Positions 5,402-8,791 of a DNA stretch of 64,000 nt are shown one piece after another. Below the pieces are notes generated by a model. That model was given only the letters and a program-made list of their open reading frames with translations. It searched no databases and was not told the DNA's origin. How positions within the stretch are numbered: position 1 is the stretch's first letter; the number at the start of each line of letters is the position of its first letter. This stretch comes from Dicyema japonicum (Eukaryota > Animalia > Dicyemida). Made by a program: the position numbers and the translations under genes. The stretch is taken from positions 2,235,485 through 2,299,484 of the forward strand of contig RDEW01000001.1 of the NCBI GenBank assembly GCA_011109175.1. Reading direction: 5' to 3'.

Positions 5402-8400
5402 ATGCTTGGTGAATCCGGCGAATACCAAAATTTAGAAAACGTTGAATTTGACAGGTAGCTGCCAAAATTGTAAAATAGTACATTTTATGGAATAAATTTA
5501 AACAACATTCTTCAAACCCGAATAAACACAGTTTTTAGCCATTTAACTCCAGAATATTTCCCAGCTGGAGGAACAACTCTCAAGGGACCAATCAGATATG
5601 TCGAATATCCTCCTTAAACTTGGTCACTTGAATCTTATCATTAAAAATATTAAGAAAGGTACCAATATGTAGTTCCCAGCTTTCTCGGCATACCAACTGT
5701 ATTTCAAATTAAACCCAAACGACTGGTGGTACAACCTCAATTTCCTCTACGGATTCGCGATATGCCACTATTACATGGGGTCCCTAGAAAAGTAAGGATT
5801 TGAAGCATTTAGTGCCTTCAAACTGCTAGGACAGCTCACTTTCTCTCGCTCAGCTTTCCCCCGACTTAAGGAAGTACATTTCCTCTCCGCTCTCATTTGT
5901 CTTCAGAGAACGGATTTTTCGGGCTACCTACACGTTATCCTCGTAGTGATTTGTAGTTCCTTAAGCTTTCCCTTTACGAATGCCGGGCCAATAGTCAGCA
6001 GTACTACGAAGGTTTGAGTTGTTAATTACTCCAGTGAAGCTCCACGTGGCTCAGGCGTACGTCTGCAAGGTTGGGGTTGAAAAATTGCAGAGGAAACCGG
6101 AAAAGGCGGTGGAAATTCTAAAGCAGATCCTGGAAGTGCGTTGTCCACGGAGAATCAAGTCCCAGGCTTTTCTACAGACGGGTGAATTGGTAGTTTACGT
6201 CAGCCTGGATGTTGTTCACGGGGGTTGACGTTGGATGCATGGGAATCAAGGAACATATCCCAGACTTGCTCAAATTGGCAATACTTTCTGATCCCGCCAA
6301 CGTGGATGCCTGGTATTTTTACGGAAGGTAAGGTTGAAGAGAATGTAGGTATTTAACGGAAACACGGGACATTCAGATAGCCTTGGATGTGTACCTCACC
6401 GCCATTAACCAAATCTGGGCGACTCCTCGACTCTGGTGCTCTGTCGGGTTGGGGTTTATGTTATTCAGGATTCTCTATCATCACCAATGTCAATACCGAG
6501 ATGCTCTGCAAGCCTACGTCTGCAGTATGAGACAGGACTACTCTAACCCACACACATGGGTGAACATTGGAACCCTGTATGAGTGCACTCTGCAGTATGC
6601 TGACGCACTTGAGTGTACAAACAGGCTTATAATTACCGTTTGATCACTTTGAACAATTTAGTCAAAACACGTTACATTCGGAACAGGATGCGTGTTGTTT
6701 CAAACTCTACCCCGATTCCTCATCACAACGTACTCCCTCCAATAAAAGAATTTATCGCCGAATTTGCTGCCCATTCCTTCAACAGGAGACGGGTACTTGT
6801 TTTACTGAACCAGGAGGGGGAACCTGTGACCAACTGTGACTTTCAAGTTTTGTTCAAAAATTTGAAAACTGGCGTATTTTTCCTACTCATTTGTAGGGGA
6901 CAACAAACCTTAGTCAGCGCCTCAGTCGATATGGTCTTACAATAGATAACTGGCCAGTTTGGATGGTATTAGTGGACTGTCACTTCATTCGCTGGTAAAT
7001 CTCATCCAAATTGTAGTCTGATGCATTCCTTCGCGGATATTCCTTTGTTTGTCGGGCGGATGACTCGGTTCCCGAACCTTTGTCGTTCAGTCCTGTATGT
7101 TTTGAGCTAATCTCAGACTACTGATAATGAAAGTCATTTCAGGAAGCCTACCTACTACTCAATAGACGTGACGGCTTCACGAATGATGACTTCCACCTGC
7201 GCCAGTATGGATGTGAAGTTAACGGAGACTTCTGCGAACATCAAATTACACCGAAAATGCCAGCCATTGGACTTTGGGCTTCTCCGACCTACAAAAATAG
7301 TTTCCGTGGATTGCAAGACCGAATCTTGTTGGCGAGAACTACGAAATGTTTGCTATTCCAACGACTGTGTTGTTCTCAGGAATCTGGGTCATTCTGTAAA
7401 ATTCGGTTGTTTGTGCATTATTCAGATTTCTCCGTTTTTTCCTCCTCATTACTGCAAAAAGCTGTGGGAAACCGAGAAGTGTCAGTCACCACCCACGTTG
7501 GTCCATAAATTTACATTAGTCATGCTATGAGAGGCCGGGGGAGAACCTGAATTCGGAAGGCGACAGAATTTGGAAGATGCCTGGGAAGAAGATGAAGATG
7601 AGTGTCTCTAAGTGCAGCGTAGAGCAGGCTCAAAGCTTCAGGGAGTCCATGAAGGGGTCCTACTCTGCGGAAATGGTAAACATCTGTTCCTTTGTGCTAC
7701 TGTCTCAGAATAGTGACATCAATCTGTGGGCCCTGCAGAAGCAAGAACTGGATAAGTTGCCCAGTTTCCTCAAAGTGACTCCTATATTTACTTCAGATTA
7801 ACTCGGCACTCAATATGTTGAACTACATCCGTTACTGGCCTCCCCAGAGTGGTCCCACGTTGAAGATGCTGGTCTCCGGTTCTCGAATGAGCGGTTAGGC
7901 GAGAAAAATTATCCGTAGCTCGCCAGTCCGACGGAGGCCTGGTTTCCGTGTACCTGAACACTGGGCCTGGCGGTATTGAGTGGTTCTGCATCCCTGGAGC
8001 TTTCGAGGACCAGTTTAGAGCCGCCTGTGAAAGGTAGTATGTTTGATGAGTGCAGGAAGGGTGTGAGCACCGATGACTATATCTGGCCTAGCTTACTGTG
8101 CCTGACCGAACAGAATATTCCTTTCCATAGGTTCATACAAAAGCCTCATGACTTTGTTTGGCTGAACTCTGGATGCTTTTACTACTTTGAATCCAAAGGA
8201 TGGACTAATGCCGTCTGCTGGTCGCTTGCACCGCTGACCTGCAGACACTTGCAGTTCATGGTGGACCGTTATGAGCTGGACAGATTCCAATTCAAGAGTC
8301 CAACTGTGCCAGTGATGTATTTGAGTTGGATGCTGGCTCAGTCGGTGAAGTTTGTGGACATAAAGTTCTTTGACACTGTAAAGTTGGTTTGTGGTCATTC

Positions 8401-8791
8401 AGGTATGTCATCATGCGGTCCTTGATTCATTGCCAGCAGACGTTGGACTATGTGCAATCGGTTAATACGAACTGCCGAATCAGGAGACTGGGTGACAGTA
8501 CAGGGGGTGTTGTGAGGGAGGAAAAGTTTAGGGCCCTATTCTGTGGGGTTTGTAAGGTGGGTTTGTTGTGATGGTCAGAGTGAGATTTTCAATGTTTTGT
8601 TTGCTCCTGTGGATATGAACGATTTATCGTTGAATTTGTCGACTGGGAATGATAGAGTGAGGGTGAGTCTGAGGTGTTTGGATTGTGTTACAAAGTGGTC
8701 TCCTAATTTGGATAAGGTTGTGGTTATTATACAACATGAAATAATCGAACTGACTAATATTTATGATTCTTTTCAGCTTAGTAACGCTTGA
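5402..8791 (+). CDS. KDM6A: KDM6A/UTX-like protein (TPR repeats + degenerate JmjC + C-terminal Zn-binding domain), multi-exon with tiny introns
   Basis: Spliced translation gives FDSTFYG, TPR segments (LWCSVG..YHHQCQYRDALQAY...HTWVNIGTLYE), ELDKLPSFLK, RFIQKPHDFVWLNSG, VPVMYLSWMLA, CGVC...CLDC and IYDSFQL, all colinear with the UTX family. Example introns: 5455-5478 (24 nt) and 7894-7918 (25 nt). There is an apparent 1-nt frameshift near 6615 and the frame is unresolved near 6900-6960. Confidence 0.88.

Follow-up and report, generated by a model that had tools for sequence, protein, structure and literature searches.

It is disputed whether KDM6 proteins matter mainly for their catalysis or as scaffolds; the catalysis is largely dispensable in mice. 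A locus of Dicyema japonicum, a parasite of the octopus kidney, raises this question in a sharp form: what is a UTX protein kept for when every residue of its active site has been replaced? The locus lies in a stretch of 64,000 nucleotides (the window) on contig C1 of an assembly of 67,542,437 bases in 377 contigs. The initial annotation of the window had described a KDM6/UTX pseudo-demethylase at 7840-8200 that might be kept as a COMPASS scaffold or H3 reader. We propose that this gene, the sole KDM6 detected in D. japonicum, is an intact gene that has lost its whole active site and is probably retained only for a scaffold use, in an animal that has kept the writer of the Polycomb silencing mark. 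A fully dead sole KDM6, kept together with KMT2C/D and a PRC2 writer, would be a natural test of enzyme versus scaffold. The surfaces that it retains may mark out the part of UTX that matters apart from catalysis, a question of relevance to Kabuki syndrome and to tumour suppression by UTX. JmjC pseudoenzymes and non-catalytic roles of UTX are already known, and what is notable here is that the dead protein is the sole detected KDM6. The proposal is tempered by the fast-evolving genome, by the incomplete assembly on which the absence of paralogs rests, and by an animal that is hard to work with.

Gene model and domains of the UTX-type locus

The predicted gene and its features, with residues in human numbering, are as follows.

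5402..8791, + strand: UTX/KDM6A-type gene of 23 exons and 968 amino acids (local model with four omitted bases restored and a predicted start codon)
5553..6637, + strand: TPR-repeat region, exons 3-11; last repeats best kept, D336 and A337 retained, G137 to A
6615, + strand: apparent frameshift; one T absent from the assembly (four DNA libraries)
6950 (exon), 6072 and 7417 (introns), + strand: further single-base omissions (four DNA libraries)
6662..7257, + strand: short, poorly conserved linker, where the exon limits are least certain
7482..7490, + strand: E999 to S and R1001 to T (contact of H3R26; substrate cleft lost)
7700..7708, + strand: N1087 to L and D1089 to Q (contacts of H3K27 and R26 lost)
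7797..7893, + strand: JmjC exon with Y1135 to K, K1137 to L, T1143 to M and P1144 to S
7856..7867, + strand: off-frame H-V-E-D; only a 65-nt intron at 7872-7936 would bring it into register with the following exon
7894..7918, + strand: predicted GT-AG intron of 25 nt just 5' of the HxE position (best-scoring splice)
7919..8033, + strand: exon with H1146 to R, E1148 to S and N1156 to Y; S1154, GPG and EWF kept
8056..8382, + strand: end of JmjC and the KDM6 helical domain; H1226 to Y (8180-8182), N1236 to A, A1238 to C and I1267 to T
8403..8791, + strand: GATA-like Zn domain; four Cys and L1342 kept, E1326 to F and E1335 to K

Searches of the exons against the PDB returned matches only to KDM6A, UTY and KDM6B, the best being KDM6A 3AVR (E = 5e-24, exon 8056..8382), and the alignment to KDM6A/B was gapless over both the HxE and the distal-His motifs. 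The predicted protein matched Macrostomum UTX end to end (E = 4e-111 over residues 35-965), and in a search of 1.84 billion representatives the best full-length matches to the UTX exon were 33-44% identical. The TPR array is homologous to that of UTX (E = 2e-51 to newt UTX residues 94-411) and keeps 45 of the 87 TPR columns of at least 90% conservation, the last TPRs being the best-kept N-terminal part (43% to Macrostomum). PF02373 scored over its cut-off at the locus, PF21322 (KDM6 helical domain) scored 34.8 bits against a cut-off of 26.8, and PF21326 (Zn domain) reached 24.1 bits on one exon (E = 3e-5), just under its cut-off of 27. The Zn cysteines C1331, C1334, C1358 and C1361 are all kept (at 8542, 8551, 8675 and 8684). 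These profile matches and the four cysteines agree with the initial description of the TPRs, the JmjC scaffold and the CxxC...CxxC Zn domain as kept. The distance from the TPRs to JmjC is 434 residues in the dicyemid protein versus 483-954 in seven homologs. In a tree the dicyemid branch measured 4.7, compared with a median of 0.32, and is too long for placement among UTX orthologs. Judged by these homologies, the locus is a KDM6 member by descent, a UTX ortholog of the KDM6A type.

The reading frame was checked against reads of four DNA libraries from one sample, which is probably the assembly's own source, so that they serve as a check of the assembly and not as independent support. No substitution was found at 7840-8200 in the four libraries. 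At 6072, 6615, 6950 and 7417 all four carried one extra base at full contig depth, and each of the omitted bases lies within a short run. Both apparent frameshifts in exons stem from errors of the assembly, and the one near 6615, which the initial annotation had linked to a possible pseudogene, is not real. With the four bases restored the 968-codon frame is open and has a single stop, at its end; the frame of the uncorrected assembly ends at codon 367. The 22 predicted introns are all GT-AG and 20-25 nt long (44 canonical splice ends), and GC3 is 0.53. Ultra-short introns are already known in D. japonicum (PMC13644364), and the assembly has 5,012 genes, a mean intron of 38 bp, a BUSCO score of 76%, a gap rate of 4.1% and 92% of transcripts mapping (PMC6736024), about 8% of the transcripts being missing from it. 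Four single-base omissions within 3.5 kb also mean that apparent frameshifts elsewhere in the D. japonicum genome warrant a read check.

Could alternative splicing rebuild the metal site, or could the locus be an unexpressed pseudogene? Of 215 possible splice models for the HxE region, the predicted introns 7894-7918 and 7775-7796 scored best (47.9 bits), and the 25-nt intron used in the initial annotation is thus retained; the best model yielding an HxE reached 32.6 bits. The off-frame HVED at 7856-7867 could be brought into the HxE register with Tyr1226 as the third ligand, as PHF2 uses a Tyr as its third metal ligand, and 4 of the 215 models do give an HxE correctly spaced from the GPG motif. 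However, this would require the 65-nt intron 7872-7936 plus one of 17, 44, 75 or 84 nt in a gene whose introns are 20-25 nt. It would also delete at least 22 core residues, including the Y1135/K1137 strand, cost 15-26 bits of score and restore none of the 2-OG contacts. The distal H to Y change, midway in a long exon, is independent of splicing. We therefore regard a rebuilt metal site as very improbable. An unexpressed pseudogene would fit the two frameshifts of the assembly and the lack of an RNA run containing the gene among the runs listed (at most four per study), but with these frameshifts being assembly errors, the frame open, the splice sites intact and GC3 as given above, we see hardly any chance for it.

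Loss of the active site and of the histone contacts

The initial annotation had read all three Fe(II) ligands and the 2-oxoglutarate (2-OG) contacts as replaced, and the gene model bears this out. H1146 is R (CGC at 7921-7923), E1148 is S (TCC at 7927-7929) and the distal H1226 is Y (TAC at 8180-8182), while K1137 is L (7869-7871), T1143 is M (7887-7889) and N1156 is Y (7951-7953). The roles of the last three as 2-OG contacts come from UTY numbering plus 53 (PMC4140284), and those of E999 and R1001 in the H3R26 contact and the substrate cleft from PMC7866879 and PMC4140284. The ionic H3 contacts are E999 and D1089 for R26, E1326 for R17 and E1335 for K23 (PMC7866879). In the dicyemid protein S1025, N1087, P1144 (which stacks on H3P30), E1326 and E1335 are all replaced as well. 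We take Y1135, N1236, A1238 and G1128 to be further pocket or contact residues. Held against what an active demethylase requires, the predicted protein has R/S/Y at the Fe triad, L/M/Y at the 2-OG contacts and S/Q/S/F/K at the H3 contacts. Since mutation of H1146 and E1148 abolishes UTX activity (PMC5788527), the dicyemid UTX is very likely without catalysis. The protein would no longer be able to bind Fe(II), 2-OG or the H3K27 peptide, and no demethylation would result.

To set these changes against the divergence of the whole protein, we used a reference alignment of 54 diverse intact KDM6 proteins. Two residue sets were picked, in part from papers, without regard to the dicyemid state: a pocket set of nine (Y1135, K1137, T1143, H1146, E1148, N1156, H1226, N1236 and A1238) and a substrate-contact set of seven (E999, R1001, S1025, N1087, D1089, G1128 and P1144). 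Not one of the nine pocket residues was kept, compared with 58 of the 90 other columns with at least 95% conservation (Fisher p = 2e-4). When the substrate contacts (0 of 7) were added, p fell to 6e-7, and the loss is therefore targeted. The retained S1154 is less conserved and hence lies outside the tested sets. Across the nine pocket codons at least 15 of the 27 bases must have changed, yet the frame is open, and under simulated neutral decay at 5% per site an open frame survived in 0.1% of runs. This points to purifying selection on the gene and not on the pocket. In keeping with the initial reading, the gene is not a decayed pseudogene: its frame is intact and under selection, and every Fe(II) and 2-OG ligand is gone. 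An intact, selected frame with selective loss of the catalytic residues is, by its sequence, that of a JmjC pseudoenzyme. No other dicyemid ortholog, as a partner for dN/dS, was found among the 1.84 billion representatives or by word search.

Selection does not appear to act on the TPRs only. Identity to the consensus is 0.38 in the TPR region versus 0.41 in the JmjC region, so that the TPRs are no better conserved and selection on both halves is indicated, with the TPRs not singled out. The helical and Zn domains keep 15 of their 25 conserved columns. By these measures selection maintains the C-terminal module too, whether for its fold or for interactions with other partners. The catalytic exons of dicyemid EZH, KMT2C/D and KDM5 are 64%, 58% and 56% identical to human proteins (counted from alignments), compared with 33-44% between the UTX exon and its closest full-length matches. 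Other dicyemid JmjC enzymes, namely KDM5 (with HxE and the distal His), JMJD5 and HSPBAP1, have an intact HxD/E..H, and TYW5 keeps HxD. Ligand loss, as judged from these genes, is not lineage-wide among dicyemid JmjC enzymes.

Erasers, writers and histone H3 in the genome

Genome searches with PF02373, a 17-row KDM6 profile and Macrostomum UTX found no second KDM6 locus, and the window holds neither a second KDM6 copy nor an N gap. A JmjN search of the genome returned KDM5 only, KDM4 and KDM2/7 were not detected, and searches with JHD, Tudor_2 and JmjC_2 added nothing. The paralog search for which the initial annotation had called thus detected no intact KDM6, KDM4 or KDM2/7 in the assembly. 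Run exon by exon, without a positive control and on an incomplete assembly, these searches are moderate evidence; the KDM6 profile missed the HxE exon of the UTX-type gene itself, as short exons escape an exon-wise search.

The search for PRC2 gave a mixed picture. EZH is present, with CXC and SET motifs and a last exon 64% identical to EZH2, and there are two divergent SUZ12 genes (L022 and L023, on contigs C46 and C376). EED was not found with two degenerate motif patterns and a WD40 scan, which did not co-locate, 150 of the 345 WD40 candidates having been scored, and a model of the EED-binding helix of EZH had no match at the EZH locus. At that locus (L006:1459-1668, minus strand) an E replaces the K of the GNKIR motif before RFANHS, which is either real or an assembly error. 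No Polycomb chromodomain was seen among the 30 loci read, which were HP1-like, CHD or SUV39, and CBX7_C and RAWUL searches, run without a positive control, gave no candidate in the genome. HP1-like chromo/chromoshadow genes are greatly expanded (L064-L093, on C24, C315, C51, C74, C301, C342 and others), with tandem copies on C24. There are at least eight SET loci (KMT2C/D, EZH, SETD1, NSD, SET8, two SUV39H and SETDB1), among which MLL1/2, SETD2, ASH1L, EHMT and SUV4-20 were not seen; the two SUV39H genes (L010 and L011, on C323 and C367) are present in a reduced genome.

Histone H3 itself has changed around the substrate lysine. K4, K9, K27 and K36 are kept in divergent H3 tails (L026-L035, L041 and L042, on C343, C223, C20, C268, C345 and C324), R17 and L20 are kept, and both H3 types keep R26-K27, with Ser or Thr at position 30. 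The clustered H3 carries G13A, A15V, A29V and P30S, and the intron-bearing H3 carries Q5H and P30T. Residues 29-32 of the dicyemid tail differ from the usual sequence.

The initial annotation had raised the possibility that H3K27 demethylation was lost or rewired in this lineage. The sole detected KDM6 being without ligands fits the first part, which we refine to an eraser lost and a writer kept (EZH, two SUZ12 and H3K27), the loss being what we infer. With EZH, SUZ12 and H3K27 retained and no further gene for an H3K27 demethylase detected, H3K27 methylation may be lost passively, through dilution at replication or turnover of histones, and not enzymatically. This is the least certain step of the mechanism, and we give it about an even chance. 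Evenly balanced, too, is the broader proposition that dicyemids keep PRC2 and H3K27 methylation without any H3K27 demethylase, the single KDM6 being purely a scaffold and its substrate surface having drifted together with an H3 tail that lost P30. If true, this would be an animal that resets its Polycomb marks without an eraser.

A probable scaffold of KMT2C/D COMPASS and its alternatives

KMT2C/D is encoded on contig C333, with ePHD, FYRN and SET domains, and the genome also has a PA1-like match that is weak and under the cut-off (E = 6e-4). On the same contig a motif search revealed a tandem repeat of about 130 bases in about 17 copies (C333:227166-229678). In the TPR region of the dicyemid protein G137 is Ala and D336 is kept; we take both positions to have a role in TPR binding to MLL3/4, and G137V reportedly impairs that binding. 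UTX binds MLL4 via its TPR-containing N-terminus (PMC7608747). In C. elegans a catalytically dead UTX-1 remains in the SET-16 complex and rescues the animal even without the JMJD3 paralogs (PMC3342935), and in Drosophila, which has one KDM6, catalysis is essential (PMC5788527). We consider it likely that the dead UTX is kept as a non-catalytic TPR scaffold of KMT2C/D COMPASS. The protein would be retained as a non-catalytic subunit of the complex (MLL3/4, Trr), held via its TPR region, and the JmjC-helical-Zn module would stay folded to serve structure or interactions. The Ala at G137, the strong divergence of the whole protein and the fly result count against this reading, as does the equal conservation of the TPR and JmjC halves. 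The other half of the initial proposal, an H3 reader, fares worse: the contacts of R26, P30, R17 and K23 are replaced and P30 is absent from the dicyemid H3 genes. The replaced H3 contacts leave no more than the Zn cysteines and L1342, which makes a role as a canonical H3K27 reader unlikely.

Compared with UTX/KDM6A of human (3AVR), Drosophila (Utx) and C. elegans (UTX-1), the dicyemid protein shares the TPRs, JmjC, the helical domain and the GATA-like Zn domain with its four cysteines, in a genome with KMT2C/D. It differs in the replacement of all Fe(II), 2-OG and H3 contacts, in its short linker and in its extremely long branch. UTY/KDM6C is a KDM6 of low activity, presumed to work mostly without catalysis. 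It has all its iron and 2-OG ligands, shows weak activity (PMC4140284) and stands beside active UTX and JMJD3, whereas the dicyemid protein keeps no ligand and has no detected partner KDM6, so that "more extreme than UTY", as it was first described, is apt. The engineered dead UTX-1 (PMC3342935) and Drosophila Utx (PMC5788527) likewise lost the HxE/D ligands and kept the rest of the protein. The dicyemid loss, however, is natural, fixed and far more extensive, and it fits the worm result and contrasts with the fly. Two other JmjC proteins offer a parallel. Epe1 of fission yeast is a JmjC pseudoenzyme kept in a chromatin complex. JARID2 is an inactive JmjC subunit of PRC2 without two Fe ligands (PMC4140284). 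Both belong to other JmjC subfamilies, and the dicyemid case concerns the KDM6 ortholog itself.

Two further readings have to be weighed against the COMPASS scaffold. The dead enzyme could be kept outside COMPASS, with remodellers, CBP or transcription factors, or as a changed binder whose Zn domain sits on L20 of the altered H3. The JmjC and Zn domains are indeed kept as well as the TPRs (with the Zn cysteines, L1342 and the 15 of 25 columns), H3 R17 and L20 are kept, and G137 is changed. Against this stand the KMT2C/D and PA1-like genes in the genome and, for a histone binder, the replacement of all canonical contacts of R17, K23, R26, K27 and P30, and on balance we judge such a role unlikely. 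A different objection concerns the demethylase and not the scaffold: an active KDM6 (or a KDM4 or KDM7) may have been missed by the assembly or the search, with a division of labour as in the copepods and mites described below. Tigriopus P0185, contig L061 and Fragariocoptes pair a dead TPR copy with an intact one, and the gap rate, the BUSCO score and the missed HxE exon all leave room for such a gene. But three queries found no other KDM6 locus, where an intact copy would outscore the dead one; the window, the JmjN search and the JHD and Tudor_2 searches gave nothing beyond KDM5; and P30, a residue that KDM6 recognizes, is missing from the H3 genes. A missed active copy is in our view improbable, and it would remove only the claim of lost demethylation.

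Dead UTX proteins, as judged from their sequences, are not unique to dicyemids: copepods and mites also carry one, next to a copy that is active. In copepods a TPR-bearing KDM6 with H to R and distal H to Y lies in tandem with a TPR-less, intact JmjC copy. Examples are Tigriopus TCAL_01654 (P0185) and contig L061:3001-8583 (P0020/P0302), the genes of which fall among copepods in the tree. This tandem pair looks like a split of scaffold from catalysis. The gall mite Fragariocoptes setiger (P0046, P0311) has a TPR copy with E to T and H to N, plus an intact copy. Like the dicyemid protein, these copepod (Tigriopus, Caligus) and Fragariocoptes copies are ligand-less TPR-KDM6 proteins, Tigriopus with the same H to R and distal H to Y. 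Unlike it, they show a partial loss (N1156 is usually kept), are far less divergent and have an intact KDM6 in the same genome where this could be checked. If our reading is true, evolution has repeatedly separated the UTX scaffold from catalysis, and dicyemids kept the scaffold only.

The distal His is also replaced in KDM6 of Rodentolepis nana (P0030, F) and Trichuris trichiura (P0143, Y). The losses elsewhere appear independent of the dicyemid one, because they are nested in arthropod, flatworm and nematode clades with intact members. The triad is kept in the free-living and parasitic flatworms Macrostomum, Calicophoron and Paragonimus, and annelids keep a kdm6 gene (PMC12153100). A literature search found no report of a dead KDM6 in dicyemids, copepods, mites, Rodentolepis or Trichuris. 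Further proteins of the copepod-type pair, dead TPR or intact, are P0192, P0008, P0188-P0191 and P0134, and P0041, P0048, P0312-P0318, P0322 and P0325 form what is probably an eriophyoid-mite clade of TPR-KDM6 proteins without most or all of the triad.
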